Shown in pieces: positions 42,400 to 64,000 of a DNA stretch of 64,000 nt. Both the position numbers and the translations under genes were made by a program. The DNA is from Piromyces finnis finn (lineage: Eukaryota; Fungi; Neocallimastigomycota): the NCBI GenBank assembly GCA_002104945.1, contig MCFH01000038.1, forward strand, positions 186,001 to 250,000. Direction: 5' to 3'. Below the pieces are notes generated by a model, which ran no database searches, was not told where the DNA came from, and saw only the letters and a list, made by a program, of their open reading frames with translations. The first letter of the stretch is position 1. The number at the start of each line of letters is the position of its first letter.

Positions 42400-45015
42400 A
42401 AATATTATCAATTAGATAATATTTACTTAGTACCAACGCCATTGGTTGTTGTTGTTGTTGTTGTTCCATTGATTCCATTGATTGTTGTTGTTGTTGTTGT
42501 TATTCCATTGATTCCATTGATTGTTGTTGTTGTTGTTGTTGTTCCATTGATTCCATTGATTGTTGTTGTTGTTGTTATTCCATTGATTCCATTGGTTGTT
42601 GTTGTTGTTGTTCCATTGATTCCATTGATTATTGTTGTTACCTTGGTCCCATTGGTTCCATTGATTGTTGTTGTTGTTATTCCATTGATTACCTTGATCA
42701 AAAGTAACACCTTGATTACCATTAGATTGTGGTGGGGCTTGTTGAGTTGGGGCTCCTCCTGCATTACCTCCTGCATTACCTCCATTACCTTGACCAATGT
42801 AAACTTTAGCATATGGGAAATCTGCGGTACCACTAGTACCTGCTCCATTACTACCTGCTTCTCCTAAAACTTTAGCTTCATGCATTTTACCCATAGTCAT
42901 ACCAAGCTTTTCCCATTGAGCAAAGTGAGCTGAAATATCAATTGTACCACAATCACGTGGGGTTTGACGAATACTAAAGTATTGTTTGAATTGAGTATCA
43001 CCATCAATAGATGGTCCAAAACGAGTGTTTTCAAAAACTGTGTATTGAGCACCATCAATGGTGAAATCACCATGTTTCTTATTACCAACCCAATCACCTG
43101 GACGATATTGACTAAGCCAGTTATCAACAATGTAGAATTCTACAAGTGGATTTCTGGTCCAACCGTAGATACCAACATAGGAATAATCGACATTGGCAAT
43201 GTTTTGCTTGACAAGTTTGAAGTCAGCATACATGTGACCAATTTGAGAATGAGATTGAGTACTGTCGAAGGAAAGACCGGAACGACATAAATAATCCTTA
43301 GCATTAGAGAAAGAACAAGAGAAAGAACCATCAGAATAGAAAGTAGCACTGTTATTACCACTATCAGCCCACATTTCATAACCAACACCACCAATGGAAC
43401 CAACCTTATTTCCGGTTTCCTTAACACTTTGACCAGAGTGAGAAGCACTGCTACAGAAACTTTGAGCTAAAGCAGAAGTAGCAAAAGATAAAGCAACTGG
43501 AATGAATTGACTGAATTTCATTTTTTATTATATATACAAATATTTAAAATTATTTAAAATTTAAATTTTATTTTTTATTAATTCAATTAATAAGTAATTA
43601 TAATAAGTAATTATAATACAATTAAAATGATACTATAATAAGAAATATTAATAAATATTAATACTAATGAATTAAAAAAAAAAGAATGAATTGATAAATT
43701 TGAAGGAAAAATTTGAAACTATTTATACAATGAAATTTAAATCATCTCTACTAATCCTTTTTTGAAAATATTTTAAAAATTTCATTTATAAGCAGATTTA
43801 AATTAAAAATTCTAGATTTTAATTTATTTTCTCTAGGAAATACAATAATAATTTAAGTTTCAAATGAAAATAATTTATATTAAAATTTATGGTATTTATG
43901 GAGACATAGGAAGAGATAGGTTTAAAAAAAATATTAAATTCTAAACAAAAAGAAATAATAATAATATTTGATATTATGAAAATTATCCCAATAAAAAACT
44001 ATTAAACTTCACATTAACTCAATCGATTTAATATAAATGATTTACTTTTTTTTTTTTTTTAATTAAAAAGGTAGATATAAAAAATCAATAGTAATATAGA
44101 TAGAGAGATATTTTGAATAACTTGTACGAATTTATTTCTTTTCTTTTAATGTATAGTGAATGAGTATATAATAAAGGTATAGTAAAAGTATATTAAATAT
44201 TATATAAATATTAAATATTATTTTAATCGTATTTATCATTTTATCACATCCCATCCTAACAAAAGTATTCATAAAATATTTTATTCAATAACGGCATGCA
44301 TTTAAAAAAAATATTAACAAAACCAACATTATAAAACATTTGTACAACAACCAAGTTCTTTGATATTTTTTAAAATTAGTTATAAATGGTTACACACTAA
44401 TAATATTGAAAAATAAACCAATAACTATTTTTTATATATATATATATATTTAAAATTTAAATAAATTTTTAATTATTCTTTATTTATTTTTATTTTTATT
44501 ATTTTTATTATTATGAGTAAACAATTTCTTTTTTCTATTTTATAAGGTTTGCTTTATAAACTTTATACCTTTTGGGTTTTTAATGTTTATTAATATCAGA
44601 TATTAAAAAGTTGAAACTTTTCTAATATAATAAATTAAATGTTAACAGTTTAATAGATTTGTTGTTTTCTTTAAATTTTAATTTAAAAAATAGTCTATTT
44701 TTAGTATCCTACTTTGTTTAATCTTTCTAAAGTTTTTAATAGTTAAACCTAAATAGTTTTATTTATAAATATTAATATATAATATGAATTTTTTCAACAA
44801 ACCATTAAAAAAAGTTCATCATCATATTATTATTCTAATTATTAAACTTTTCTTTCATCATAAAAAAATATTAAAATATATTATCATAAATCATAAATCT
44901 ATAATAATAAATTAATAAATAAAATAATTATTTGAAAAGTTAAAAATTTGTGACAACTTTAACAACAATATTTAAATTTTATAAAAATTAAAGTTACATT
45001 ATAGTTCTCATACCA
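42400..45015. repeat. Direct segmental repeat, partner of about 61325-64000
   Basis: Xylanase copy 1 plus about 1.5 kb of upstream DNA matches copy 6 and its upstream DNA to the window end (45015 corresponds to 64000). Confidence 0.9.
42427..43521 (-). CDS. Secreted GH11 endo-1,4-beta-xylanase copy 1 (364 aa, type I N/Q/W tail, ends WRWY)
   Basis: Signal peptide. Catalytic domain closely resembles Neocallimastix XynA-type GH11 (YGWTRNPLVEFYIVDNW, HEAKVLGEAG). Intronless, no dockerin. Confidence 0.96.
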   Translation of the reverse strand: MKFSQFIPVALSFATSALAQSFCSSASHSGQSVKETGNKVGSIGGVGYEMWADSGNNSATFYSDGSFSCSFSNAKDYLCRSGLSFDSTQSHSQIGHMYADFKLVKQNIANVDYSYVGIYGWTRNPLVEFYIVDNWLSQYRPGDWVGNKKHGDFTIDGAQYTVFENTRFGPSIDGDTQFKQYFSIRQTPRDCGTIDISAHFAQWEKLGMTMGKMHEAKVLGEAGSNGAGTSGTADFPYAKVYIGQGNGGNAGGNAGGAPTQQAPPQSNGNQGVTFDQGNQWNNNNNNQWNQWDQGNNNNQWNQWNNNNNNQWNQWNNNNNNNQWNQWNNNNNNNNQWNQWNNNNNNNNQWNQWNNNNNNNQWRWY

Positions 45016-45729
45016 TTAAAAAAAAAAAAAAAGATGAAAAAAAGACCGCAAAAAAAGAAACTTAATCCATTGAGTTTTAAAAGTCTTTCCAATAAAAAAA
45101 ATAATAAAAACATAAAGATTAATAAATTACAAATATATTTTTTATCTTAATATTACTAATGTATTAAATGTGTGAAGCTTTTTAATTCTTTTTCCTAGAC
45201 TATAAGTTTATTATAAAAAATTTTTATTTTTTTATTATAATCTAATTTAATATATCTTAACTTGTGGATTTCCACATGCTCAATAATTAATTTATGTTAT
45301 TAATTATATGTAATACAATAATATTATTATTTATTAATTTCTCGATAAATTAAATAATTTCTAAAATAATACTAAAATGGATTGCTAAATAACTAAACAA
45401 TAATAATAATAATAAGTTAATTTAATATGATTAAAAATAATAATTAGTTTCTATAATTTTTATTAAAATTCCTATTCAAAAAGGCCCTTTTTTCCGTATA
45501 TAGAAAATGTGTGTTCATCTTTCTTAGAATGCTTAAATCTTGATAATACTTTATTAATAATAAAATTTATTTAACCCTTAACTCTTTCTGAGTATACATA
45601 GAAGATAAAAAAATTTAATATTTAAATCAAGATGCTATCATAAATTTTCTATCTTAAACTGATTAAAAAAAAACAAACAAATTAAACCAATTTATTTTGA
45701 AAAAAAATAAAAAATTAACAAATTTTATC

Positions 45730-45900
45730 AATAAAAGAGAAAGAAGATGTGAAGCCCTTTTACATATTGCTTATGAAGCGCTACAGGTGTTACTCTGAAA
45801 AACAAAAAAGGTGTTACACCATTACATTATTTGAAACGAAAAAATTTTGCTAAATATTTAACAGAAAATGACTTGGATGATACCATTGAAAAAAAATAAT
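45730..45900 (+). pseudogene. Possible ankyrin-repeat gene remnant
   Basis: Frame-broken translation gives ...EALLHIAYEALQVLL* and NKKGVTPLHYL, resembling the G-x-TPLH ankyrin consensus. Short and not verified. Confidence 0.4.
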
Positions 45901-46016
45901 AAACGATCGTTTAATGGTCAAAGAAGAAAAAAAGTTAAATTGTCATGAATCATATTCATCATAATATTCAATTAAAAAAAAAATTGAATCTTGGCCACCA
46001 TAGAATAATATAGGAA

Positions 46017-46119
46017 ATATATATACAAATACATAAACATAACTTAATATTATAGAAATTAATAATAATATATATACAAATACATAAACATAACTTAATA
46101 TTATAGAAATTAATAATAA
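46017..46119. repeat. About 51-bp tandem repeat, 2 copies plus a degenerate third
   Basis: atatatacaaatacataaacataacttaatattatagaaattaataata occurs twice in tandem. Confidence 0.8.
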
Positions 46120-47513
46120 GTAAAAACTATAAAGTAAAGATAATATATACAAAATACATAAATGTAACTTAAATAGAAAACATTAATAAATTTCATGATT
46201 ATCATTTTTAAAAATGAATCTTTTTAATATTTTATTTTGTTAAATTTAATATTTATTAAGAAAATAGAAATTAAGAAAAAATATTCTTATTCTTATTTTT
46301 AATTTTCACTTTTTACTTTATAATCTAATTATAATTTTATTTTTAACATCATACATTATAATCTATATTAGTATTAGTATGAAGAATAATATTATATATT
46401 ATTCTTTATAATTTTCATTATATATTGGCATTTATTTTATTTATATATTTATAAATATTTAAAATTAAACGATTTAGAATTATCATTAAAATCTATATCA
46501 CACTAATTAAAAATTATACTTTTTTTATTTAAACTATATATTTTCCTCATATAAAGATTAGAATAATCTCATTAATAATATAATGAGAAATGTTACCTAT
46601 TTCAACATTTCTCATTCTTAATTCATTTATCATTATATAAATTATATGACCTGTACCATACGATCAATTTGATAATGTAACCATAAATGAACACTTATGG
46701 CCAAAAAAAGAAGAATAATTATTTCTTTGTGTAATTTGTGTAATTGGCTTACATGCCGTTATATAGTTCTATATGTCACCACATATACCATATTAATCTT
46801 TTTCATCTCTTTTAAGGTTCTACAAAAAATTAAATATCATCATGTATAATTAGTTAATATTATAGATGGCGGATTAAATAATATTATTTAATATTATTTT
46901 ATAATCATCATAATAATGAAAATAATAAATATTATCATTAAATTTAATTTAATAAAAAGATATTAATTACTTTATAAACTCTGTTTTAAATTTATGCTTT
47001 TAATTTATTAATTTAATATATATATATAAAAGTTTATACTTTCTATATTATTACCTTTTAGTATTGATATATAAGCATGTGGTTTAATTTTTATTTATTT
47101 TATTAAATATTATTTTTTTAAAAAAATAAATAAATAATAGAGTTCCATATAAATCTCCTTTTCAATATTAGATAAAGTTTACATAACTAATTTAAAAATA
47201 CTCGAATAGATGTTACGATTAATTTTTATTAATGAAATTTTACTGATATTTATTTTTTAATTTTTATTGAAATACCAATAATTTTTTAAAATAAAATTTT
47301 AATATACTTTAATAAAGAAACATATAAATAGAGAATTTTCTCTTCAAATTACAATGTATAATATCATAATAATTGTATAAAATAAATCATTATAAATTAT
47401 AAAAAAAACTCTCTTTTGTATTATATTAATTCATTGTAAATTATTATTATAATTTATTTAAAATTTAATTTTAATTATTTGTGAAAAAAAAAAAAATTAA
47501 TAAAATAATAAAA

Positions 47514-48722
47514 ATGAAATTCAGTCAATTCATTCCAGTTGCTTTATCTTTTGCTACTTCTGCTTTAGCTCAAAGTTTCTGTAGCAGTGCTTCTCACTCT
47601 GGTCAAAGTGTTAAGGAAACCGGAAATAAGGTTGGTTCCATTGGTGGTGTTGGTTATGAAATGTGGGCTGATAGTGGTAATAACAGTGCTACTTTCTATT
47701 CTGATGGTTCTTTCTCTTGTTCTTTCTCTAATGCTAAGGATTATTTATGTCGTTCCGGTCTTTCCTTCGACAGTACTCAATCTCATTCTCAAATTGGTCA
47801 CATGTATGCTGACTTCAAACTTGTCAAGCAAAACATTGCCAATGTCGATTATTCCTATGTTGGTATCTACGGTTGGACCAGAAATCCACTTGTAGAATTC
47901 TACATTGTTGATAACTGGCTTAGTCAATATCGTCCAGGTGATTGGGTTGGTAATAAGAAACATGGTGATTTCACCATTGATGGTGCTCAATACACAGTTT
48001 TTGAAAACACTCGTTTTGGACCATCTATTGATGGTGATACTCAATTCAAACAATACTTTAGTATTCGTCAAACCCCACGTGATTGTGGTACAATTGATAT
48101 TTCAGCTCACTTTGCTCAATGGGAAAAGCTTGGTATGACTATGGGTAAAATGCATGAAGCTAAAGTTTTAGGAGAAGCAGGTAGTAATGGAGCAGGTACT
48201 AGTGGTACCGCAGATTTCCCATATGCTAAAGTTTACATTGGTCAAGGTAATGGAGGTAATGCAGGAGGTAATGCAGGAGGAGCCCCAACTCAACAAGCCC
48301 CACCACAATCTAATGATAATCAAGGAGCTAACTTTGGAGGTCAAAATCAATGGAACCAAGGTAACAACAATCAATGGAACCAAGGAGGTAATCAAGGAGG
48401 TAACCCATGGGACCAAGGTAACAACAATCAATGGAACCAAGGAGGTAATCAAGGAGGTAACCCATGGGACCAAGGTAACAACAATCAATGGAACCAAGGA
48501 GGTAATCAAGGAGGTAACCCATGGGACCAAGGTAACAACAATCAATGGAATAATAACAACCAATGGAACAACAACAACAACAACAATCAATGGAATCAAT
48601 GGGACCAAGGAAACAACAATAATCAATGGAATAATAATAACCAATGGAACAACAACAACCAATGGAATCAATGGAATCAAGGAAACAACAACCAAGGTGG
48701 TAATCCATGGCGTTGGTGGTAA
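47514..48722 (+). CDS. GH11 xylanase copy 2 (402 aa, type II tail with three 19-aa units, ends WRWW)
   Basis: True ATG is 11 codons inside the tracked ORF. Same catalytic domain as copy 1. Confidence 0.96.
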   Translation: MKFSQFIPVALSFATSALAQSFCSSASHSGQSVKETGNKVGSIGGVGYEMWADSGNNSATFYSDGSFSCSFSNAKDYLCRSGLSFDSTQSHSQIGHMYADFKLVKQNIANVDYSYVGIYGWTRNPLVEFYIVDNWLSQYRPGDWVGNKKHGDFTIDGAQYTVFENTRFGPSIDGDTQFKQYFSIRQTPRDCGTIDISAHFAQWEKLGMTMGKMHEAKVLGEAGSNGAGTSGTADFPYAKVYIGQGNGGNAGGNAGGAPTQQAPPQSNDNQGANFGGQNQWNQGNNNQWNQGGNQGGNPWDQGNNNQWNQGGNQGGNPWDQGNNNQWNQGGNQGGNPWDQGNNNQWNNNNQWNNNNNNNQWNQWDQGNNNNQWNNNNQWNNNNQWNQWNQGNNNQGGNPWRWW

Positions 48723-49756
48723 TCATGAAGGCAAAAATGTTAAATTTCAAAGATTATTATATTGTTCTCATCCTTGAAGTCATTATTGAATGAAAAAAAT
48801 AAATTATTTTTTAAAATAGAAATGGAAAATATTATTTTTAGTTTTTTTTATTATTAGAAAAGAATTAATATATATTTTTGTAATATATTTATATAAAGTT
48901 ATAAACTTATTTTATTAATGAAATAAAGTAAAATAATTTTTGAGTTGTATATAAGTAACCAAATAACGTAGATACAATAAAATAGAATAATATAAATAAT
49001 AAAACCATAAATAAAACTGTTGCTAAAAAATTAAATACTGTTTTGTCTTGTTGACATTAGTATAATTTCAATTATAATATAGAATAGTGAAAAATCCTGG
49101 AATCCTGGCCTTACGTATCTTTTCTAAATCATCATTGATTATTTCTATATTAGAAATAATAATAAAATAAAATATTTATTACTATTAATAATAAAGTAAA
49201 TTAATGATTAAATATAATAAAGTTTTTACAAAAGTAGTTAAAATAAAATGTTCAAAGTAAGCTTTATTTTAAATTGTAATTTATATTAGTATTATTATAT
49301 TAGTATTATTAGAATTCGGATATGATTATAGTAAAAGTATAAAAGTAATTCATTCATTTTAATGAAATTTATTTTAATACAATATATCGTTTTCATTTAT
49401 TTTTACTTTTTTTTTTCATTAAAAATTTAATAAGAATTGTAATGAGTTATGATGATTAAAGTTGATAAAGCATCAAATTCATATATAAATCATTATTTTT
49501 AAAATTAAAGTGCTTAATAATGTGAGAAATCATTTGATTTGTTGTTACAGTTAATATATCAATTTCATTAATTTGAAGAATATTCATTGATAATGAAATT
49601 ATAATATATTTTAATATTATTTATTAATAAGAACTTGAAATTTTAATAATAAATAATTATTCATATTCCTTATAACATTTAAATTTTAATTAAACTAAAA
49701 TAAATATTATTATTAGGCATGTTTAAATTTTAATAATGTTTTCTTAATCCCATTAA

Positions 49757-49950
49757 TTTCATTGACGGTTGTTATCTTAGTTCTGTTGATTGTCTTGACC
49801 TCCAAAATTAGCATCTTGATAGCCATTATATTCTTTTTGAGTTGAATTTCCTCCGGTATTACTTACATTGCCTTGTACAATGTATATTTTAACATAAGGA
49901 GAAATGGTTATATCACAAGTCCTGGCACCATTATTACTAATTTCTCCTAT
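49757..49950 (-). pseudogene. Decayed GH11 xylanase fragment (catalytic C-terminus, linker, start of type II tail)
   Basis: Translates IGEISNNGARTCDITISPYVKIYIVQGNVSNTGG...NGYQDANFGGQDNQQN*, aligning to LGEAGSNGAGTSGTADFPYAKVYIGQGNGGNAGG...NDNQGANFGGQNQWNQ. Confidence 0.82.
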
Positions 49951-49981
49951 TAATATATTTCTAATAATTTCAATATATTAT

Positions 49982-52519
49982 TTTCATATTTAATTAAACA
50001 CTTAATAAATAGTAAAAATAATAAATAAAAATAAAAGAGAAACAAGTCATTTTTTGGTTAATAAATTCACTTGAAAACCCTTTTTTTTTAAGCAAACACA
50101 ATAATTTAATAAAAATACTAAAGAATTATAAATGATTATTAAATATATATTGGCTAATTGTTTATTTATAAAGTTTTATTAAATATTTTTAAAATTTTTT
50201 ACATATATTTTACAAATCTATTATATTCGAAAGACTTTTTAAGAATTTTTTAAAAATATTTTAATAGTAAAAATTATTTAAAGATTATTTTTATAAAAAA
50301 AATTAAAAAAATTTTTTTGAACATATATTTTACTAAGCTTATTGTTTTATTTTATAATATTTGAAAGTTTATTTCTTTTCATCTAATACCAACGCCATTG
50401 ATTGTTATTGTTTCCTTGATCCCATGGATTACCACCTTGGTTCCATTGGTTGTTGTTGTTGTTCCATTGGTTATTATTATTCCATTGATTATTGTTATTT
50501 CCTTGGTCCCATTGATTCCATTGATTGTTGTTGTTGTTGTTGTTCCATTGGTTGTTATTATTCCATTGATTGTTGTTACCTTGGTCCCATGGGTTACCTC
50601 CTTGATTACCTCCTTGGTTCCATTGATTGTTGTTACCTTGGTTCCATTGATTTTGACCTCCAAAGTTAGCTCCTTGATTATCATTAGATTGTGGTGGGGC
50701 TTGTTGAGTTGGGGCTCCTCCTGCATTACCTCCTGCATTACCTCCATTACCTTGACCAATGTAAACTTTAGCATATGGGAAATCTGCGGTACCACTAGTA
50801 CCTGCTCCATTACTACCTGCTTCTCCTAAAACTTTAGCTTCATGCATTTTACCCATAGTCATACCAAGCTTTTCCCATTGAGCAAAGTGAGCTGAAATAT
50901 CAATTGTACCACAATCACGTGGGGTTTGACGAATACTAAAGTATTGTTTGAATTGAGTATCACCATCAATAGATGGTCCAAAACGAGTGTTTTCAAAAAC
51001 TGTGTATTGAGCACCATCAATGGTGAAATCACCATGTTTCTTATTACCAACCCAATCACCTGGACGATATTGACTAAGCCAGTTATCAACAATGTAGAAT
51101 TCTACAAGTGGATTTCTGGTCCAACCGTAGATACCAACATAGGAATAATCGACATTGGCAATGTTTTGCTTGACAAGTTTGAAGTCAGCATACATGTGAC
51201 CAATTTGAGAATGAGATTGAGTACTGTCGAAGGAAAGACCGGAACGACATAAATAATCCTTAGCATTAGAGAAAGAACAAGAGAAAGAACCATCAGAATA
51301 GAAAGTAGCACTGTTATTACCACTATCAGCCCACATTTCATAACCAACACCACCAATGGAACCAACCTTATTTCCGGTTTCCTTAACACTTTGACCAGAG
51401 TGAGAAGCACTGCTACAGAAACTTTGAGCTAAAGCAGAAGTAGCAAAAGATAAAGCAACTGGAATGAATTGACTGAATTTCATTTTTATTATTTTATTAA
51501 TTTTTTTTTTTTTCACAAATAATTAAAATTAAATTTTAAATAAATTATAATAATAATTTACAATGAAGTAATATAATACAAAAAATAGTTATTTTATAAT
51601 TTATAACAATTTATAATGATTTATAATGCTTTATTTTATATACAATAATATTTATAATATTATAATATTATAATATGAATAAAAATATTATGATAATGAT
51701 GATAATAATTTAAAGAAAACCTTTCTCTATTTATAATAAAATTTTTATATTAATGGAGACACCATTCGTTAAAAGATATAAGATATTCAAGAATATTAAA
51801 AAAAATATTCATCAATAATAATTTAGAAAATATTAAAATAAAATATGGAGACAAATGAAGATTTATTAATTTTTAATCAATTTAAGCATTACGAATGGTT
51901 TTTAATGGTTTTTTTTCATTTTTTTTTTATTTTTGAAACTGAAACTTAATATAAATATTTAAAAGAAAATAAAACTTTAAAAAATAAAAGAATAGATTTT
52001 ATGGTAATTTTATTTTATATTTCTAATATAATAATAATAATATCTTTTTTTTTTTTTTAATTATTATTTTTTTTTTAATTAAATAAATGAATTTTATTTT
52101 TATTATTCTAATTTCTTATTTTTTATTTTATACAGCTACATCAATTGGTTATTATTTTTAATTATTATTAAATAGACATGCTTATTATACTTATTAAATT
52201 TAAATTATAATTCTAACACTTGTAAAAAAAAATAAAGAAAACATCTTTTCTAAATTTTAACGGTAGTTGTAAATATAATATAAATTAAAAAACTTTATTT
52301 ATAATATTTGTAATTCTTAAACTTCAATTATTAATTCTTGACCTTTTTTATGAAAATTTAAAAAATTATCATTATCTATATAAAAAATGTTTGATTATTA
52401 CTTTTATATAAAAGATAGTATAGCAATAATGCATTATGATATTGTAACTTCTTAGTATTATAACATTATTAGAAATTAAAAAAATAATATACTAATAATT
52501 ATACTAATAATTTATATTA
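49982..52519. repeat. Left arm of an about 2.5-kb inverted duplication
   Basis: Reverse complement of 53277 to about 55810. The outer 200 bp or so are more diverged. Confidence 0.9.
50383..51483 (-). CDS. GH11 xylanase copy 3 (366 aa, type II tail, ends WRWY)
   Basis: Same as the other copies. True ATG at 51483. Confidence 0.96.
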   Translation of the reverse strand: MKFSQFIPVALSFATSALAQSFCSSASHSGQSVKETGNKVGSIGGVGYEMWADSGNNSATFYSDGSFSCSFSNAKDYLCRSGLSFDSTQSHSQIGHMYADFKLVKQNIANVDYSYVGIYGWTRNPLVEFYIVDNWLSQYRPGDWVGNKKHGDFTIDGAQYTVFENTRFGPSIDGDTQFKQYFSIRQTPRDCGTIDISAHFAQWEKLGMTMGKMHEAKVLGEAGSNGAGTSGTADFPYAKVYIGQGNGGNAGGNAGGAPTQQAPPQSNDNQGANFGGQNQWNQGNNNQWNQGGNQGGNPWDQGNNNQWNNNNQWNNNNNNNQWNQWDQGNNNNQWNNNNQWNNNNNQWNQGGNPWDQGNNNNQWRWY

Positions 52520-53276
52520 AAGTTTTGTATAATATTACTATAAATCAAAATAAATATGTAAACTATTTTAGATATATTCTTTTTTTCTAATAATATAATA
52601 AATGATTATTAAATGTTTTTTTTTTTTTTTTAAATATATATATAACATATTGAACTTTACAATAAAATGAATATTAAAAAAAGTGTTTATAAACTTACTC
52701 AATAAATCTTATTAAATAAAGTTACATATTCTAATTCAAAATCCAAAAGATAATAGCATAAAAACGATAAAAAACGATAAAATGGCATTAAAAATATCAA
52801 AATATTCCGCATTCCATAAATAAAATATTTAATTAATTTTACCAATAAAAAAATAGGAATAAATTCATTAAAATATTTATTTTTAATGACAAACCAATAA
52901 AACACACTTTTTTTTAATGGAATATATTCACTAATAATTATAAATAAAAAAATAATTTAATAATATGTAATGTTACCTCAAATTATGAAAGGTTGAAAAC
53001 TTAAAAGAATTATTAGTTATATATTTATATTTATTTATTATAATTCTTACATTATTTTATACATAGCAATGCTTAAGCATTTCTGTAATAGACTTCTAAT
53101 TAGATTAAATTTTATTTTATCTTGGATTTAGAATTAAGTTATACAATCCTATTTATTAAGAATTATTGATTAATTCTATATTATTTTTATATACTTTTTA
53201 TTGTAAAGTTATACGTTATATTTTTATAAAAAAAAAAAAACAATCAAAAAGTATTACGGCTGTTAAATACTAATAA

Positions 53277-55810
53277 TAATATAAATTATTAGTATAATTA
53301 TTAGTATATTATTTTTTTAATTTCTAATAATGTTATAATACTAAGAAGTTACAATATCATAATGCATTATTGCTATACTATCTTTTATATAAAAGTAATA
53401 ATCAAACATTTTTTATATAGATAATGATAATTTTTTAAATTTTCATAAAAAAGGTCAAGAATTAATAATTGAAGTTTAAGAATTACAAATATTATAAATA
53501 AAGTTTTTTAATTTATATTATATTTACAACTACCGTTAAAATTTAGAAAAGATGTTTTCTTTATTTTTTTTTACAAGTGTTAGAATTATAATTTAAATTT
53601 AATAAGTATAATAAGCATGTCTATTTAATAATAATTAAAAATAATAACCAATTGATGTAGCTGTATAAAATAAAAAATAAGAAATTAGAATAATAAAAAT
53701 AAAATTCATTTATTTAATTAAAAAAAAAATAATAATTAAAAAAAAAAAAAGATATTATTATTATTATATTAGAAATATAAAATAAAATTACCATAAAATC
53801 TATTCTTTTATTTTTTAAAGTTTTATTTTCTTTTAAATATTTATATTAAGTTTCAGTTTCAAAAATAAAAAAAAAATGAAAAAAAACCATTAAAAACCAT
53901 TCGTAATGCTTAAATTGATTAAAAATTAATAAATCTTCATTTGTCTCCATATTTTATTTTAATATTTTCTAAATTATTATTGATGAATATTTTTTTTAAT
54001 ATTCTTGAATATCTTATATCTTTTAACGAATGGTGTCTCCATTAATATAAAAATTTTATTATAAATAGAGAAAGGTTTTCTTTAAATTATTATCATCATT
54101 ATCATAATATTTTTATTCATATTATAATATTATAATATTATAAATATTATTGTATATAAAATAAAGCATTATAAATCATTATAAATTGTTATAAATTATA
54201 AAATAACTATTTTTTGTATTATATTACTTCATTGTAAATTATTATTATAATTTATTTAAAATTTAATTTTAATTATTTGTGAAAAAAAAAAAAATTAATA
54301 AAATAATAAAAATGAAATTCAGTCAATTCATTCCAGTTGCTTTATCTTTTGCTACTTCTGCTTTAGCTCAAAGTTTCTGTAGCAGTGCTTCTCACTCTGG
54401 TCAAAGTGTTAAGGAAACCGGAAATAAGGTTGGTTCCATTGGTGGTGTTGGTTATGAAATGTGGGCTGATAGTGGTAATAACAGTGCTACTTTCTATTCT
54501 GATGGTTCTTTCTCTTGTTCTTTCTCTAATGCTAAGGATTATTTATGTCGTTCCGGTCTTTCCTTCGACAGTACTCAATCTCATTCTCAAATTGGTCACA
54601 TGTATGCTGACTTCAAACTTGTCAAGCAAAACATTGCCAATGTCGATTATTCCTATGTTGGTATCTACGGTTGGACCAGAAATCCACTTGTAGAATTCTA
54701 CATTGTTGATAACTGGCTTAGTCAATATCGTCCAGGTGATTGGGTTGGTAATAAGAAACATGGTGATTTCATCATTGATGGTGCTCAATACACAGTTTTT
54801 GAAAACACTCGTTTTGGACCATCTATTGATGGTGATACTCAATTCAAACAATACTTTAGTATTCGTCAAACCCCACGTGATTGTGGTACAATTGATATTT
54901 CAGCTCACTTTGCTCAATGGGAAAAGCTTGGTATGACTATGGGTAAAATGCATGAAGCTAAAGTTTTAGGAGAAGCAGGTAGTAATGGAGCAGGTACTAG
55001 TGGTACCGCAGATTTCCCATATGCTAAAGTTTACATTGGTCAAGGTAATGGAGGTAATGCAGGAGGTAATGCAGGAGGAGCCCCAACTCAACAAGCCCCA
55101 CCACAATCTAATGATAATCAAGGAGCTAACTTTGGAGGTCAAAATCAATGGAACCAAGGTAACAACAATCAATGGAACCAAGGAGGTAATCAAGGAGGTA
55201 ACCCATGGGACCAAGGTAACAACAATCAATGGAATAATAACAACCAATGGAACAACAACAACAACAACAATCAATGGAATCAATGGGACCAAGGAAATAA
55301 CAATAATCAATGGAATAATAATAACCAATGGAACAACAACAACAACCAATGGAACCAAGGTGGTAATCCATGGGATCAAGGAAACAATAACAATCAATGG
55401 CGTTGGTATTAGATGAAAAGAAATAAACTTTCAAATATTATAAAATAAAACAATAAGCTTAGTAAAATATATGTTCAAAAAAATTTTTTTAATTTTTTTT
55501 ATAAAAATAATCTTTAAATAATTTTTACTATTAAAATATTTTTAAAAAATTCTTAAAAAGTCTTTCGAATATAATAGATTTGTAAAATATATGTAAAAAA
55601 TTTTAAAAATATTTAATAAAACTTTATAAATAAATAATTAGCCAATATATATTTAATAATCATTTATAATTCTTTAGTATTTTTATTAAATTATTGTGTT
55701 TGCTTAAAAAAAATAGTTTTCAAGTGAATTTATTATTCAAAAAATGACTTGTTTCTCTTTTTTATTATTATTATTTTTCCTTTTTATTAAATGCTTAATT
55801 AAATATAAAA
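53277..55810. repeat. Right arm of the inverted duplication
   Basis: Reverse complement of about 49982-52519, separated by a 757-bp unique spacer. Confidence 0.9.
54312..55412 (+). CDS. GH11 xylanase copy 4 (366 aa, identical to copy 3 except one T to I change)
   Basis: HGDFIIDG versus HGDFTIDG (base 54772). True ATG at 54312. Confidence 0.96.
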   Translation: MKFSQFIPVALSFATSALAQSFCSSASHSGQSVKETGNKVGSIGGVGYEMWADSGNNSATFYSDGSFSCSFSNAKDYLCRSGLSFDSTQSHSQIGHMYADFKLVKQNIANVDYSYVGIYGWTRNPLVEFYIVDNWLSQYRPGDWVGNKKHGDFIIDGAQYTVFENTRFGPSIDGDTQFKQYFSIRQTPRDCGTIDISAHFAQWEKLGMTMGKMHEAKVLGEAGSNGAGTSGTADFPYAKVYIGQGNGGNAGGNAGGAPTQQAPPQSNDNQGANFGGQNQWNQGNNNQWNQGGNQGGNPWDQGNNNQWNNNNQWNNNNNNNQWNQWDQGNNNNQWNNNNQWNNNNNQWNQGGNPWDQGNNNNQWRWY

Positions 55811-56729
55811 AAAACCATTACATGCATTAGAAATATTCAGTCCATATTTTGATATAACTAAATTATCATATAGTTATGTTAATTTTTTTTTTTTTTGAAA
55901 TATATAAAATAATTGTTAATCGATATTGTTCATAATAAATACATGATTACTAAAATCTTATATACCCTAATTATTTTATATTCATATTTCTTGACATATC
56001 AGTACTATTAATCATTAGTACAATCTCCTAAAATGTTAAAATATTACTCCTATATGCACATTAGGAATTTAAGATTAAATAAAATTTTTTCTATAATCCT
56101 TTTAAACAACAAAAAAATTTCATTCAAATATTAAACTAAAAATCAAGATAAATTTATTAATAAATTTAGTAACTGGAAGATTAGTATTTGTATGTATATG
56201 TTTCTAGTATAATTATTTATTCATAAGAAAGTAATAAGTAAATTACTAAATTACTTTCTTATGAATAACGAGGATATTTAAAGGATACTCCTTTTAATAA
56301 TTAACCCGGATTTTTTTCCTTTACAACAAAAAACCAATTTGTTTAAAAATCAAAGGTAAAATAAAAGTTCAATAACCTAATCCATTCACAAATAAAAATT
56401 TTGACAATCTTTTAAATACTTTTTTAATATTTTCTTATACAAGGAAGATAATACACTTTTTCATGTATTTACTTATTTATTTTGTGATTTTACATTATAT
56501 TAGATAATAATACATAGGGTTATTTATAATAAACATATTGATATCATTGACATAATAAATAATATATAAAACTAATAAAATATATATAAATAAAAATAGA
56601 AATATAAAATAAAATATAACAGTTTCAATTAAGTTCAATGAACTTGAAATTTTTAATGTGTGGGATCGGTCCCTACCTAATAAATTAAATGAAATAAAAA
56701 TAAAAAAAAAGAAACATTAAGTATGATAG

Positions 56730-57520
56730 TATAGTATCCACTAGACTCTCCTATGAGTAATGTTTTCAATCAAAAAAATACTACCATTGAACTGTAGGGA
56801 ACATTTTCCTTTTACCATAGCAATAAGTCGCCGGCGCTCTTAATTACATTAGGTGTCTATTAAATCTATCAAAAAATAATTTTATATAGCTACTAATGAT
56901 AAAAATTGTTTTTGTTAAAAAAGTCTCAAAACCCTCTATGTATGGAACATGAGACTCCAACAAACTGTAAAGCTGTTCATTCAAATATTATTTTCCACCT
57001 TATCGATTTGTAATTCATCATAAACTAAAATCTCACCAAAAAAAAACGTTACAAATAGTTTTTCTTATTTCCATTTCAGTAAGTGATAAATTGATTCTTA
57101 TATTTATCATGAAAAGGGATAAAAAGATCATCAAGAAAACAAAGTGAGAAAGTTCTGTACTCAGATAATGCAAAACATTCTAGTATCCAACAATGAAAAT
57201 ATTATTCACCATATCCGCAATATGGACAGATACGAAGGGTCAGTCAGTAGTAAGTTTATTGCAAACAATAGCAACTTTGGTGGTAATGTTTACATAACCG
57301 CATCAAATACGAACAATCTAAGTAATTTCTAAATTCAATTGAAGTTTGCTTTGACCACTTATTTATTCCAAAAGACATTTCATTTAAATTCTCCCAATTA
57401 AGAACTAGATTAAGCATCTTTTGAAAATTCTTCTTGCTAGACACAATCAGAATGATGTTATCAGCAAAGAGGCCACCACAATTACATTTATTTCCTAAAT
57501 TAACACCAAGCCTTTCACAA
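56730..57520 (-). mobile_element. Degenerate non-LTR (LINE) retrotransposon fragment
   Basis: Minus strand reads CGGLFADNIILIVSSKKNFQKMLNLVLNWENLNEMSFGINK (RT FADD-type motif region), then RICPYCGYGE*YFHCWILEC (C-terminal zinc-knuckle-like), with stops and an apparent internal deletion. Confidence 0.72.
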
Positions 57521-58050
57521 CTAATTCTTTAATGTTATACTATTCCACGTTAAAAATAAAACGATAAGTCTTACTTATTTTTATATTATAAATAAGATTA
57601 ATTGGGGAATTGAATTTAAATGAATATTTTAAAAAAAAAAAAAAAAAAAAACTTTTCCATTTATTAATTTTACATTAAAAAGGATTATAAATGAAATATT
57701 TTATATTTTTATTATATTCTTTAATATTATACTTTATTTATATATATTATTATTATAATATTAAATTTTACATTGAAATTACTTTTTATAAAAAAAAATT
57801 ATATATTTATTTATCAAATTTTATAATACAAAATATATTTACTCTTATAAAATTGAATGTACATATTTCTTGTATTTATATATTAATTAATTAAAAAAAA
57901 AATTTTTTTATTTTATATAAAAGAAAATTAATATTTACTACTTAAAAATACTTTTTTTTTTGGATTGATAGCATATACAAAAAAAAAAAAATAAAGTGTA
58001 CGTTTTATAAAAAATATCAAGATACAAGATACATAATATCTTATTTAAAT

Positions 58051-59217
58051 TTACCACCAACGCCATGGGTTATTGTTATTGTTTCCTTGATCCCATGGAT
58101 TACCACCTTGGTTCCATTGGTTGTTGTTGTTGTTGTTCCATTGGTTATTATTATTCCATTGATTATTGTTGTTTCCTTGGTCCCATTGATTCCATTGATT
58201 GTTGTTGTTGTTGTTGTTGTTCCATTGGTTGTTATTATTCCATTGATTGTTGTTACCTTGGTCCCATGGGTTACCTCCTTGATTACCTCCTTGGTTCCAT
58301 TGATTGTTGTTACCTTGGTCCCATGGGTTACCTCCTTGATTACCTCCTTGGTTCCATTGATTGTTGTTACCTTGGTTCCATTGATTTTGACCTCCAAAGT
58401 TAGCTCCTTGATTATCATTAGATTGTGGTGGGGCTTGTTGAGTTGGGGCTCCTCCTGCATTACCTCCTGCATTACCTCCATTACCTTGACCAATGTAAAC
58501 TTTAGCATATGGGAAATCTGCGGTACCACTAGTACCTGCTCCATTACTACCTGCTTCTCCTAAAACTTTAGCTTCATGCATTTTACCCATAGTCATACCA
58601 AGCTTTTCCCATTGAGCAAAGTGAGCTGAAATATCAATTGTACCACAATCACGTGGGGTTTGACGAATACTAAAGTATTGTTTGAATTGAGTATCACCAT
58701 CAATAGATGGTCCAAAACGAGTGTTTTCAAAAACTGTGTATTGAGCACCATCAATGGTGAAATCACCATGTTTCTTATTACCAACCCAATCACCTGGACG
58801 ATATTGACTAAGCCAGTTATCAACAATGTAGAATTCTACAAGTGGATTTCTGGTCCAACCGTAGATACCAACATAGGAATAATCGACATTGGCAATGTTT
58901 TGCTTGACAAGTTTGAAGTCAGCATACATGTGACCAATTTGAGAATGAGATTGAGTACTGTCGAAGGAAAGACCGGAACGACATAAATAATCCTTAGCAT
59001 TAGAGAAAGAACAAGAGAAAGAACCATCAGAATAGAAAGTAGCACTGTTATTACCACTATCAGCCCACATTTCATAACCAACACCACCAATGGAACCAAC
59101 CTTATTTCCGGTTTCCTTAACACTTTGACCAGAGTGAGAAGCACTGCTACAGAAACTTTGAGCTAAAGCAGAAGTAGCAAAAGATAAAGCAACTGGAATG
59201 AATTGACTGAATTTCAT
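58051..59217 (-). CDS. GH11 xylanase copy 5 (388 aa, type II tail with two 19-aa units, ends WRWW)
   Basis: Same catalytic domain as the other copies. Confidence 0.96.
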   Translation of the reverse strand: MKFSQFIPVALSFATSALAQSFCSSASHSGQSVKETGNKVGSIGGVGYEMWADSGNNSATFYSDGSFSCSFSNAKDYLCRSGLSFDSTQSHSQIGHMYADFKLVKQNIANVDYSYVGIYGWTRNPLVEFYIVDNWLSQYRPGDWVGNKKHGDFTIDGAQYTVFENTRFGPSIDGDTQFKQYFSIRQTPRDCGTIDISAHFAQWEKLGMTMGKMHEAKVLGEAGSNGAGTSGTADFPYAKVYIGQGNGGNAGGNAGGAPTQQAPPQSNDNQGANFGGQNQWNQGNNNQWNQGGNQGGNPWDQGNNNQWNQGGNQGGNPWDQGNNNQWNNNNQWNNNNNNNNQWNQWDQGNNNNQWNNNNQWNNNNNNQWNQGGNPWDQGNNNNNPWRWW

Positions 59218-61324
59218 TTTTATTATTTTATTAATTTTTTTTTTTTCACAAATAATTAAAATAAAATTTTAAATAAATTATAATAATAATTTACAATGAA
59301 GTAATATAATACAAAAATCAATTATTTTATAATTTATATTTATAATATTTTATTTACACTAATATTATAATGAAAAAGATATAGAATAAATAAGCGAAAA
59401 AACAAAGACTATTTATATAAATTTCATTCTTTTTTAACAATCTTCATTTTATTTAAAAAATATATTAAAAAAAATTAATTTTTAATTTAATTTACCTATT
59501 ATAATTTTATTTATTAATAAAAATAAAATTAAAAAATTATACCCATAATTAAAAAACGTAATTGCTATTACACCATAAACCAAAAAAGCATATGAATTAA
59601 AATTTACATTTTTATATTTATTAATTAGTTAAATAAATGGTGGTAAAAACAAAATAAATAATATAAATAATTATATGGTAAATAGCACCAATAAAATCTT
59701 ATACTCTCTTTAAATAATAAAGAAAAGAAAAAAATATGTTAAATGATACCATTTAATATTGCATCATTCAAAAAAAAGTTATTGTGGATATTCAATTTAA
59801 AATATAAAAATTTATCTTGTCTATACTTGATCTTTTTAACCATAAAGTTTTTTTTTTTTTCAATAAAATCTTTTTAAAAAAAAAAAAAGTCATATTATTA
59901 TTACAAAGTATAATTAAGTATTCTTTATTATTTATTGTTTATTAAGTATTTTTACTAAGTATTATTATTATGAATGCTTTATAAAAAAAAAAAAATAATT
60001 CTTATGTGTGAAATTTTTAATTTGATAGTTTACTAATAATATTTAATTTTACTTATTAAAAAAAGTCAACAAAATGCATCGTATTATTATAAAATTTTAG
60101 TATTGGTGGTAGCTGTCATCCAAATCAATAAACGACAAAGAACCTATTCACCATATATTAAATTGAAACATGAAACATTTTTAAAATGTTTTAATTTAAA
60201 GATTTTCCATTTTTAGTCATTTTAAGTATTAAATATCAAAAATTAATTTAATTTTTAATACATAACCCATTTTTAATATTAATATTTAATCTATTTATTT
60301 AATTTATTTTTGATATTTATATTAAATTATGATCATAAAAACTAATTTATAAACGGCAAGTTATTAAGATTATATTTATTACAGTTTATAATTCTTTAGA
60401 TTTTAATAGGCATCACATTTTTTTTTATAATATTATTTTTTAATATAAAATAAAATTAAAAAAGTTTCTATAATTTATGGGAGAAAGTGAAAGATATTCA
60501 TTTTTTAATTTAATAAAGATATTTTACTTTATTAAACGATATAAAAGATAATCGATATAGGTTATGGTTTTTGTATATTGCAATAAACACTCAAACAATA
60601 TTAATTGTAATAATAGAACAATATTATATGTATTTATTTTTTATATTTTTTATTATTACCATTATAATATTATTCAAAAAAGAAAAAGGTTTTATTTTTA
60701 TTAGTATAGATTGTATTTTGTTATCCTGTAATAACTTTAATATTTTAATTGTCTTATTCAAATGTTATTTTATATAAATAATTATTATCTTTTATTATTA
60801 ATATTCCAAATAACAATTTTATGTCTACAATTAATATTATAACTATAAATATTCAATATTTGTAAAAATAATACTACAATAATGGTAATTTATTCTTATG
60901 AAGATTCTATTTTGTAATTCTAGTGATTCCAAGTGTTTATCTACAAATTATTAATCATTGATATTAAATTATTTATATGTTCCCTCCATATTCATAAACA
61001 AAAAGAAAAATAAAATGTATTATATTACACCACAAATTTAATATTACAAAATAATGTCTTATAACTTTATACATACATATACTATAAATCTGTTTTTTAA
61101 ATTTTTTTTAAATACATGATCTTTATTAAATAAAATTATATCAATACTAAAAAAAAATTAATGATTTAACATCTATCTAAATTTCTATATTATATAATGA
61201 AAATTTTGAAAATAAAAAATATATGAAATTACGAAAAAAAAAAAAAAATACATTTATATTTTAAATGTTATGTTAGAATTAATAAGGTTATTAATTCTTC
61301 TTTTTAGGTAGGTTTTTGCAATAT

Positions 61325-64000
61325 AAATATTATCAATTGAGATAGTATTTACTTAGTACCAACGCCATTGGTTGTTGTTGTTGTTATTGTTCCATTGATT
61401 CCATTGATTGTTGTTGTTGTTGTTCCATTGATTCCATTGATTGTTGTTGTTGTTGTTATTATTCCATTGATTCCATTGATTATTGTTGTTTCCTTGGTTC
61501 CATTGGTTCCATTGATTGTTGTTGTTGTTGTTATTCCATTGATTGTTGTTATTTCCTTGGTCCCATTGATTCCATTGATTGTTGTTGTTGTTGTTGTTCC
61601 ATTGATTGTTGTTGTTACCTTGGTCCCATTGGTTCCATTGATTGTTGTTGTTGTTATTCCATTGATTACCTTGATCAAAAGTAACACCTTGATTACCATT
61701 AGATTGTGGTGGGGCTTGTTGAGTTGGGGCTCCTCCTGCATTACCTCCTGCATTACCTCCATTACCTTGACCAATGTAAACTTTAGCATATGGGAAATCT
61801 GCGGTACCACTAGTACCTGCTCCATTACTACCTGCTTCTCCTAAAACTTTAGCTTCATGCATTTTACCCATAGTCATACCAAGCTTTTCCCATTGAGCAA
61901 AGTGAGCTGAAATATCAATTGTACCACAATCACGTGGGGTTTGACGAATACTAAAGTATTGTTTGAATTGAGTATCACCATCAATAGATGGTCCAAAACG
62001 AGTGTTTTCAAAAACTGTGTATTGAGCACCATCAATGGTGAAATCACCATGTTTCTTATTACCAACCCAATCACCTGGACGATATTGACTAAGCCAGTTA
62101 TCAACAATGTAGAATTCTACAAGTGGATTTCTGGTCCAACCGTAGATACCAACATAGGAATAATCGACATTGGCAATGTTTTGCTTGACAAGTTTGAAGT
62201 CAGCATACATGTGACCAATTTGAGAATGAGATTGAGTACTGTCGAAGGAAAGACCGGAACGACATAAATAATCCTTAGCATTAGAGAAAGAACAAGAGAA
62301 AGAACCATCAGAATAGAAAGTAGCACTGTTATTACCACTATCAGCCCACATTTCATAACCAACACCACCAATGGAACCAACCTTATTTCCGGTTTCCTTA
62401 ACACTTTGACCAGAGTGAGAAGCACTGCTACAGAAGCTTTGAGCTAAAGCAGAAGTAGCAAAAGATAAAGCAACTGGAATGAATTGACTGAATTTCATTT
62501 TTTATTATATATACAAATATTTAAAATTATTTAAAATTTAAATTTTATTTTTTATTAATTCAATTAATAAGTAATTATAATAAGTAATTATAATACAATT
62601 AAAATGATACTATAATAAGAAATATTAATAAATATTAATACTAATGAATTAAAAAAAAAAGAATGAATTGATAAATTTGAAGGAAAAATTTGAAACTATT
62701 TATACAATGAAATTTAAATCATCTCTACTAATCCTTTTTTGAAAATATTTTAAAAATTTCATTTATAAGCAGATTTAAATTAAAAATTCTAGATTTTAAT
62801 TTATTTTCTCTAGGAAATACAATAATAATTTAAGTTTCAAATGAAAATAATTTATATTAAAATTTATGGTATTTATGGAGACATAGGAAGAGATAGGTTT
62901 AAAAAAAATATTAAATTCTAAACAAAAAGAAATAATAATAATATTTGATATTATGAAAATTATCCCAATAAAAAACTATTAAACTTCACATTAACTCAAT
63001 CGATTTAATATAAATGATTTACTTTTTTTTTTTTTTTTTTTAATTAAAAAGGTAGATATAAAAAATCAATAGTAATATAGATAGAGAGATATTTTGAATA
63101 ACTTGTACGAATTTATTTCTTTTCTTTTAATGTATAGTGAATGAGTATATAATAAAGGTATAGTAAAAGTATATTAAATATTATATAAATATTAAATATT
63201 ATTTTAATCGTATTTATCATTTTATCACATCCCATCCTAACAAAAAAAGTATTCATAAAATATTTTATTCAATAACGGCATGCATTTAAAAAAAAATATT
63301 AACAAAACCAACATTATAAAACATTTGTACAACAACCAAGTTCTTTGATATTTTTTAAAATTAGTTATAAATGGTTACACACTAATAATATTGAAAAATA
63401 AACCAATAACTATTTTATATATATATATATATATTTAAAATTTAAATAAATTTTTAATTATTCTTTATTTATTTTTATTTTTATTATTTTTATTATTATG
63501 AGTAAACAATTTCTTTTTTCTATTTTATAAGGTTTGCTTTATAAACTTTATACCTTTTGGGTTTTTAATGTTTATTAATATCAGATATTAAAAAGTTGAA
63601 ACTTTTCTAATATAATAAATTAAATGTTAACAGTTTAATAGATTTGTTGTTTTCTTTAAATTTTAATTTAAAAAATAGTCTATTTTTAGTATCCTACTTT
63701 GTTTAATCTTTCTAAAGTTTTTAATAGTTAAACCTAAATAGTTTTATTTATAAATATTAATATATAATATGAATTTTTTCAACAAACCATTAAAAAAAGT
63801 TCATCATCATATTATTATTCTAATTATTAAACTTTTCTTTCATCATAAAAAAATATTAAAATATATTATCATAAATCATAAATCCATAATAATAAATTAA
63901 TAAATAAAATAATTATTTGAAAAGTTAAAAATTTGTGACAACTTTAACAACAATATTTAAATTTTATAAAAATTAAAGTTACATTATAGTTCTCATACCA
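61325..64000. repeat. Direct segmental repeat, partner of about 42400-45015, running off the window
   Basis: Matches copy 1 and its upstream DNA apart from homopolymer and microsatellite length changes and tail length. Confidence 0.9.
61353..62498 (-). CDS. GH11 xylanase copy 6 (381 aa, type I tail, ends WRWY)
   Basis: Same catalytic protein as copy 1. One synonymous change was seen at 62436. Confidence 0.96.
   Translation of the reverse strand: MKFSQFIPVALSFATSALAQSFCSSASHSGQSVKETGNKVGSIGGVGYEMWADSGNNSATFYSDGSFSCSFSNAKDYLCRSGLSFDSTQSHSQIGHMYADFKLVKQNIANVDYSYVGIYGWTRNPLVEFYIVDNWLSQYRPGDWVGNKKHGDFTIDGAQYTVFENTRFGPSIDGDTQFKQYFSIRQTPRDCGTIDISAHFAQWEKLGMTMGKMHEAKVLGEAGSNGAGTSGTADFPYAKVYIGQGNGGNAGGNAGGAPTQQAPPQSNGNQGVTFDQGNQWNNNNNNQWNQWDQGNNNNQWNNNNNNNQWNQWDQGNNNNQWNNNNNNNQWNQWNQGNNNNQWNQWNNNNNNNNQWNQWNNNNNNQWNQWNNNNNNNQWRWY

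Follow-up and report, generated by a model that had tools for sequence, protein, structure and literature searches.

Six clustered GH11 xylanases of Piromyces finnis appear to carry a tryptophan-rich inter-domain linker as their C-terminus

The window analyzed here, a 64-kb stretch of Piromyces finnis contig MCFH01000038.1 (assembly GCA_002104945.1; G+C content of ~20%), holds six intact open reading frames (ORFs) for xylanases of glycoside hydrolase family 11 (GH11) between 42.4 and 62.5 kb, in the orientation -,+,-,+,-,- according to ORF listing and re-translation. Each encoded protein ends in a low-complexity tail dominated by asparagine and glutamine and studded with tryptophan. Sequence comparison gives good support to identifying this tail as a low-complexity Asn/Gln/Trp/Gly inter-domain linker of gut-fungal carbohydrate-active enzymes (CAZymes), placed at the C-terminus since the family 1 carbohydrate-binding module (CBM1) is absent; it is a linker of a familiar type that sits where such linkers are not usually found, rather than a new fold or module. 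We propose, with a probability of roughly 0.6, that an orphaned Trp-rich CBM1 linker now forms the C-terminus of a free xylanase, is shaped by repeat slippage and gene conversion, and has been retained for a function, likely contact with polysaccharides.

The six proteins, read from a common ATG, are the same over residues 1 to 267, except for one substitution in copy 4. Re-translation confirmed what the initial annotation had described: six secreted GH11 copies with 267 amino acids (aa) in common, tails of 97, 135, 99, 99, 121 and 114 aa in copies 1 to 6, two kinds of repeat unit (types I and II), and ends of the form W-R-W-Y/W. Pfam recognizes GH11 alone in all six copies (residues 46 to 230, E ~2e-40; PF00457 at 137 to 139 bits, cut-off of 27). 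The closest solved structure is XynCDBFV of Neocallimastix patriciarum (PDB 3WP4), whose catalytic domain is like that of the window genes (residues 19 to 243, E = 1e-129) and whose solved construct is the catalytic domain alone, without a tail. An AlphaFold2 model based on a 19-sequence alignment predicts an all-beta core with predicted local distance difference test (pLDDT) values of 81 to 94. Residues E128 and E221, which we take to be the nucleophile and acid/base pair of GH11, are invariant in the GH11 alignment. Together with the profile match, the predicted beta-jelly-roll fold and its two catalytic glutamates are those expected of GH11. Neither the dockerin (CBM10, PF02013) nor CBM1 (PF00734) gave a Pfam match in the six copies or a tblastn match across the whole window, which bears out the earlier description of the enzymes as dockerin-less, and three-frame translation of the 1.5 kb downstream of each copy gave no Cys-rich ORF. 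Membership of the fungal cellulosome takes at least one Cys-rich dockerin, and on this evidence the six genes would stand outside it. They also appear to stand outside the CBM1-bearing free xylanases, to which a neighboring gene, P0017, does belong. The six are best read, from sequence, as paralogues of a secreted free GH11 endo-xylanase without a dockerin and without a CBM.

The repeat of every copy runs straight into the stop codon. Asn, Gln, Trp, Gly, Asp and Pro make up 93 to 100% of each tail (Asn, 41 to 56%; Gln, 18 to 20%; Trp, 13 to 15%); Asn and Gln together account for 61 to 74%, there are no Lys, one Arg and 2 to 5 Asp, and the residues are arranged in regular oligopeptide repeats. 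The type I unit, QWNQW-N6-8, is found in copies 1 and 6. Of the type II unit of 19 aa (57 nucleotides [nt]), copies 3 and 4 have one each, copy 5 two and copy 2 three, in keeping with the earlier claim that the terminal tails vary by repeat number; Tandem Repeats Finder (TRF) reported the 57-nt period with 3.5 copies at 99% and with 2.5 copies at 98%. The last four residues are WRWY in copies 1, 3, 4 and 6 and WRWW in copies 2 and 5. This pattern is not the product of chance: the tails belong to real ORFs that are kept in frame. They are not glycosylated linkers of the usual fungal kind, as N-x-S/T sequons are absent and Ser and Thr nearly so. In the AlphaFold2 model, residues 247 to 381 have pLDDT values of 23 to 35 and no secondary structure, and the tail is therefore predicted to be disordered. 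Separately, the tail DNA is open in several frames and on the opposite strand (48168-48777, 58041-58563 and 61349-61844), giving ORFs of 158 to 196 aa that are rich in Thr, Ile, Asn and Gly or in Val, Pro, Leu and Ile. A frameshift there would consequently not stop translation quickly; a shifted reading of tail DNA is exemplified by contig L032.

The identity of the tail emerges from a protein search with copy 3 and inspection of the matches. The same vocabulary (QW, NQGGN, GGNPWDQGN and runs of Asn) lies between GH11 and a C-terminal CBM1 in P0017, P0027, P0025, P0018, P0021, P0014, P0022 and P0053. It also joins GH10 to CBM1 in P. finnis P0204 and a dockerin to an esterase in P0121, and in metagenomic contigs it sits between GH11 and CE4 or GH10 modules. 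The initial annotation had held the tail to be not merely a linker; as a statement of identity this fails, as the same repeats are internal in P0017, P0204 and P0121. The composition is that of N/Q/W-rich inter-domain linkers, in which Asn and Gln dominate and Trp makes up ~10 to 16%, but the position between two folded modules is missing. The closest comparison is with the gut-fungal GH11-linker-CBM1 xylanases (P0017, P0027 and P0025), which resemble the window genes in signal peptide, in GH11 core (synonymous divergence [dS] of 0.10 between P0017 and the six copies) and in QW and GGNPWDQGN units. They run on into a 36-aa CBM1, whereas the window genes stop after R-W-[YW] and have longer tails with more Trp. 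The linker of P0017 parallels the type II tail through ...GGNPWDQGNNNNQW, after which P0017 continues into CBM1 and copies 3 and 4 into RWY and a stop. A protein search with the tail alone left six matches after composition correction, and an ESM Atlas feature search with the tail returned nothing usable. Among fungi, Neocallimastigomycota have the most low-complexity regions per genome, with a C-terminal preference and the highest Asn share, and these regions often co-occur with CBM10 and CBM1 (PMC11878562). A different repeat was seen in two metagenomic contigs (L026 and L034), where GH11 and two dockerins are followed by a long C-terminal (GGFDMSQFGGQ)n array that doubles as the linker before the dockerins.

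Linkers of nearly the same composition are attached to GH11 in the rumen bacterium Ruminococcus flavefaciens, in XynA of strain 17 and in ORF03896 of FD-1. The XynA linker contains 45% Asn, 26% Gln and 16% Trp, and its tryptophans were called "particularly unusual" (PMC2721979), so that the parallel drawn in the initial annotation was apt. The bacterial linkers are internal, between catalytic modules, with no terminal version described, while the window tails are terminal. Descent of the linker from Ruminococcus was considered and set aside: no Ruminococcus xylanase is among the best 120 matches of either GH11 search, and the nearest bacterial GH11 matches are from Fibrobacter. A search for tail and cap elsewhere, as the initial annotation had suggested, succeeded in gut-fungal relatives, but when bacterial genomes were scanned for DNA that could encode QWNQWNN, only chance matches came up, one of them the tail of a penicillin-binding protein. 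An archaeal ORF with a brief (WNQ)n stretch, from a Methanobacteriota metagenome-assembled genome (L081:1817-1837), also came up in that DNA scan and is probably unrelated. Three gut-fungal enzymes (L013, L030 and L031) with the order GH11, N/G/W-rich linker, GH10 and dockerin mirror the GH11-linker-GH10 arrangement of R. flavefaciens XynA.

Within the cluster, the catalytic region and the tail have had very different histories. Coding nt 1 to 802 are identical across the six copies bar two singletons (0 to 1 differences), and core dS among the copies is 0 to 0.007. Between type I and type II genes, divergence sets in abruptly at nt 803 and, upstream, at -5. An identical block flanked by diverged sequence indicates gene conversion of the catalytic region, to which the process appears to be restricted while remaining active in the cluster. 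Two pairs of copies lie in longer repeats, one direct and one inverted, and a further, decayed GH11 fragment marks the edge of the latter (Table 1); copies 2 and 5 have 1.1 kb in common at 98.8%. The 3' untranslated regions (3'UTRs) are alignable only between copies 3 and 4 and, weakly, between copies 1 and 6, and a homology between 3'UTRs of tail-type and CBM1-type genes that was seen by eye did not exceed shuffled sequences. Within a tail type, copies differ almost solely by in-frame indels of 3 to 114 nt; between close pairs, 17 of 17 tail indels are multiples of three, and some correspond to whole 57-nt units at 98 to 99% identity. What the initial annotation called hypervariability is repeat gain and loss beside a homogenized core.

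How a linker might have lost its CBM1 is illustrated by P0039, a Neocallimastix-like protein that ends ...APQNNAAPWRQW. When its DNA (L006) is laid against that of the CBM1-bearing P0018 (L064), its last codons, TGG AGA CAA TGG TAA, fall out of frame over the GGA GGA AAT TGT (GGNC) junction. A 13-nt stretch coding the CBM1 motif QCGG persists 17 nt past the stop, and the 3'UTR is matched at E = 0.017 by a CBM1-DNA profile (nhmmer, 14 CBM1-coding DNAs). Local codon use is conducive to such an event: Gly-Gly-Asn (GGT GGT AAY) read two bases on becomes TGG-TGG-TAA (Trp-Trp-stop), and the +2 frame of the junction in P. finnis P0027 reads CCWWW-stop. A frameshift near the linker/CBM1 junction is therefore a ready source of a short Trp-rich end, and we offer such a scar as a hypothesis for the end residues of the six window genes. 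A CBM1 relic that looked suggestive after copy 2 was not significant. The GH11 tree is star-like, and its well-supported branches force at least four origins of the cap type, which is weak evidence.

The same observations lend themselves to another account, in which the tail is a functionless orphan linker left behind by CBM1 loss, its end is a frameshift scar, and its conservation reflects descent, conversion and slippage turnover. The relic and the out-of-frame junction in P0039, the Trp-Trp-stop in the +2 frame of GGT-GGT-AAY, the confinement of all indels to trinucleotide repeats and the demonstrable activity of gene conversion in the cluster all agree with it. We nevertheless consider it unlikely, on account of the persistence of the terminal form across species. 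A second P. finnis locus, P0011, has a terminal tail ending PWRWY. The metagenomic P0023 and P0026 carry (QWNQNNN)n and end QWRWY, and in Piromyces sp. E2 GH11 genes with tails of this type lie in tandem and end GGNPWHWW (PWHWW). In the E2 contig (L070; KZ151016.1), genes end at 2048 and 6083 and a third starts from 10001; this is a short-read assembly with N runs (gaps) inside the repeats, hiding copy number and tail lengths. P0039 ends WRQW, the Neocallimastix-like L015 and L019 have (GWNNNNNN)n ending WHNWY, and L032 ends WHNWW. The conserved cap noted in the initial annotation thus extends well beyond the window, with W-[RH]-x0-1-W-[WY] as the consensus across taxa.

The terminal form persists in P. 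finnis, in Piromyces sp. E2 and in metagenomic relatives at core dS of 0.34 to 0.74 overall (from the window genes, 0.34 for P0023, 0.37 for E2 and 0.63 for P0011). At these distances, no 3'UTR similarity is found between the window genes and P0011, P0023 or E2, but the 12-nt end is unchanged or conservatively changed, contrary to what a neutral leftover would lead one to expect. P0011, P0023 and window copies 3 and 4 all read TGG CGT TGG TAT; elsewhere CGT becomes CAT in E2, and the TAT position holds either TAT or TGG. On a rough tree of four lineages this amounts to at most 3 changes against 12.6 expected (Poisson P ~0.0014). The Arg is kept through different codons, CGT in Piromyces and AGA in P0039, and L015 and L019 differ within WHNWY at three synonymous sites and nowhere else. 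Each window tail contains 32 to 45 TGG or CAA codons, one transition from a stop, and yet no truncation is seen in the six copies or, more broadly, in at least eight genes from at least three taxa. Finally, the median Trp fraction is 0.11 in terminal tails versus 0.024 in CBM1 linkers (Mann-Whitney p = 7e-5, near-duplicates collapsed). Taken together, these comparisons argue with moderate strength for constraint on the tail and its end, and for their retention rather than decay.

We therefore favor retention of an orphaned linker and envisage the following course of events. A CBM1 would have been lost downstream, making the linker the C-terminus, and the end residues would represent a 3- to 4-residue aromatic/basic stub, perhaps a frameshift scar. 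Slippage would diversify the tail and conversion would homogenize the catalytic region, while selection would keep the tail in place. Its likeliest role may be that of a flexible Trp-studded extension that holds to xylan or cellulose surfaces through weak, multivalent contacts and stands in partly for the lost CBM. Aromatic residues play a general role in carbohydrate binding, and it is this, alongside the retention tests and the Trp enrichment, that suggests a function for the tail; the conservation and Trp enrichment seen in the sequences would fit binding or anchoring. A bolder version is that the tail and its W-[RH]-x0-1-W-[WY] end constitute a selected, fold-less CBM substitute, a disordered sticky tail acting on plant cell-wall or fungal surfaces with an affinity set by the slippage-varied repeat number; this we put forward tentatively, as a conjecture more apt to fail than to hold.

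Several points weigh against the retention of an orphaned linker for function. Trinucleotide slippage alone could yield the purity of the repeats and the in-frame indels. None of the six window copies has a CBM1 relic after its stop by the nhmmer profile that detected the one in P0039, and their 12-nt WRW[YW] ends align equally well to several junction or CBM1 segments, which leaves a scar origin unproven in the window genes. The star-like GH11 tree, together with gene conversion, obscures which architecture is ancestral. Conversion can also distort core dS as a neutral clock, and the lineages behind the Trp enrichment are not phylogenetically independent.

The initial annotation had gone further: there the tail would be a terminal module in its own right, ending in a cap with a function and adjusted through the number of repeats, and would serve either to assemble the enzymes with one another without dockerins, as prion-like, amyloid or condensate material, or to anchor them to substrates or surfaces. 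The high share of Asn and Gln (61 to 74%) in regular oligopeptide repeats, a cross-species end motif with conservative changes only (R/H and W/Y) and the Trp enrichment of terminal tails would suit such a module, and there is precedent in a disordered C-terminal extension of a fungal lytic polysaccharide monooxygenase (LPMO) that mediates dimerization (PMC10990093). We regard it as decidedly unlikely in that form, given that the same sequence is an ordinary internal linker in many paralogues, that AlphaFold2 finds no structure in it, that low-complexity C-termini rich in Asn are commonplace across this AT-rich phylum (PMC11878562) and that end residues of this kind can come from a frameshift, as in P0039. 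The LPMO disordered C-terminal region (dCTR) is likewise a terminal disordered extension in place of a CBM on secreted CAZymes; in one such enzyme a residue near the end is functionally important and dimerization proceeds via a Cys disulfide (PMC8615602, PMC10990093). Enzyme class and composition differ from those of the window tails, making this an analogy only. The tails are similar to Sup35-type prion domains in high Asn and Gln content, oligopeptide repeats and predicted disorder with few charged residues, and by composition they would fall within that type. Sup35-type domains, however, are found inside cells, are enriched in Tyr instead of Trp and have been shown by experiment to form amyloid. 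With pLDDT values of 23 to 35 and no secondary structure, in a phylum where such Asn-rich C-termini are typical (PMC11878562), the proposed prion-like or amyloid assembly finds no support, and a self-assembling prion-like module is less likely than a Trp-studded surface-contact extension.

The gene models could in principle be incomplete, with splicing or frameshifting past the WRW[YW] stop into a downstream CBM1 or dockerin exon, and a GTA in the last codons could resemble a splice donor, but this is highly improbable, as neither the 64-kb window nor the 1.5 kb downstream of the copies has CBM1 or dockerin coding potential, the CBM1 of P0017 is contiguous with its linker without an intron, and the related L015 runs from its stop through a 289-nt 3'UTR to 13 consecutive A, as a polyadenylated mRNA would.

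The usual division of gut-fungal xylanases is between cellulosomal enzymes, which bear dockerins, and free enzymes, which bear a CBM or are bare. The cluster represents a third, recurrent form, found in at least three taxa, in which the Trp-rich linker alone remains, in frame and with a conserved end. A tail that binds polysaccharide would amount to a targeting device that needs no domain, is very simple and can be tuned, which would be of use in enzyme engineering; it would also assign a function to the "particularly unusual" tryptophans that have long been remarked on in N/Q linkers from the rumen. An inert tail would still leave the cluster a clean example of conversion evening out a catalytic domain at the same time as slippage varies the repeat beside it.

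Table 1. Features of the xylanase cluster, in window coordinates except where a contig is named; protein lengths are from the common ATG
Feature	Coordinates	Strand	Description
GH11 xylanase copy 1	42427..43521	-	364 aa; type I tail 42430-42720 (97 aa); end QWRWY; stop 42427-42429
GH11 xylanase copy 2	47514..48722	+	402 aa; type II tail 48315-48719 (135 aa, three 57-nt units); end PWRWW
GH11 xylanase copy 3	50383..51483	-	366 aa; type II tail 50386-50682 (99 aa, one unit); end QWRWY
GH11 xylanase copy 4	54312..55412	+	366 aa; tail 55113-55409, exactly that of copy 3; one core substitution (nt 461, T154I)
GH11 xylanase copy 5	58051..59217	-	388 aa; type II tail 58054-58416 (121 aa, two units); end PWRWW
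GH11 xylanase copy 6	61353..62498	-	381 aa; type I tail 61356-61697 (114 aa); end QWRWY
P0017	L001:3001-4164 (~65107-66270 on the window scale)	-	Seventh cluster member, GH11-linker-CBM1
Direct repeat	42446..45015 with 61404-64000		2.6 kb, 98.1% identity; holds copies 1 and 6 and upstream flanks
Inverted repeat	49955..52519 with 53277-55836		2.57 kb, 99.1% identity; arms hold copy 3 and copy 4
Decayed GH11 fragment, further copy	49765..49989	-	GH11 end and linker start, with stops; ~400 nt downstream of copy 3, at inverted-repeat edge

Elsewhere in the window, a 90-aa open frame between copies 4 and 5 (57259-57528, minus strand) has seven Cys and an LFADN loosely like a reverse-transcriptase motif. 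A Pfam scan of this fragment and of a 733-aa ORF at 39111-41312 gave no match.

The cluster extends beyond the window and has at least seven genes. P0017 lies shortly past the window's end, ~2.6 kb from copy 6, on a sequence (L001) whose positions 5271-7164 are the exact reverse complement of window positions 62107-64000. Exact full-length proteins of the six window genes were found for none of the six in a collection of 15 billion proteins. Comparison with deposited models (P0020, P0132 and P0128) indicates how the tails came to be missed: public models cut five of the six window genes at 242 aa as "partial," with two distinct 242-aa sequences (P0020 and P0132), and the model of copy 6 (ORX45771.1) has an in-frame 57-nt "intron" taken out. 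Since public models cut the tails off, proteome-based surveys miss the tail form. P0017 is affected in a similar way: the 78-nt "intron" in its annotation consists of in-frame PAQD-type linker sequence and is probably not a true intron.

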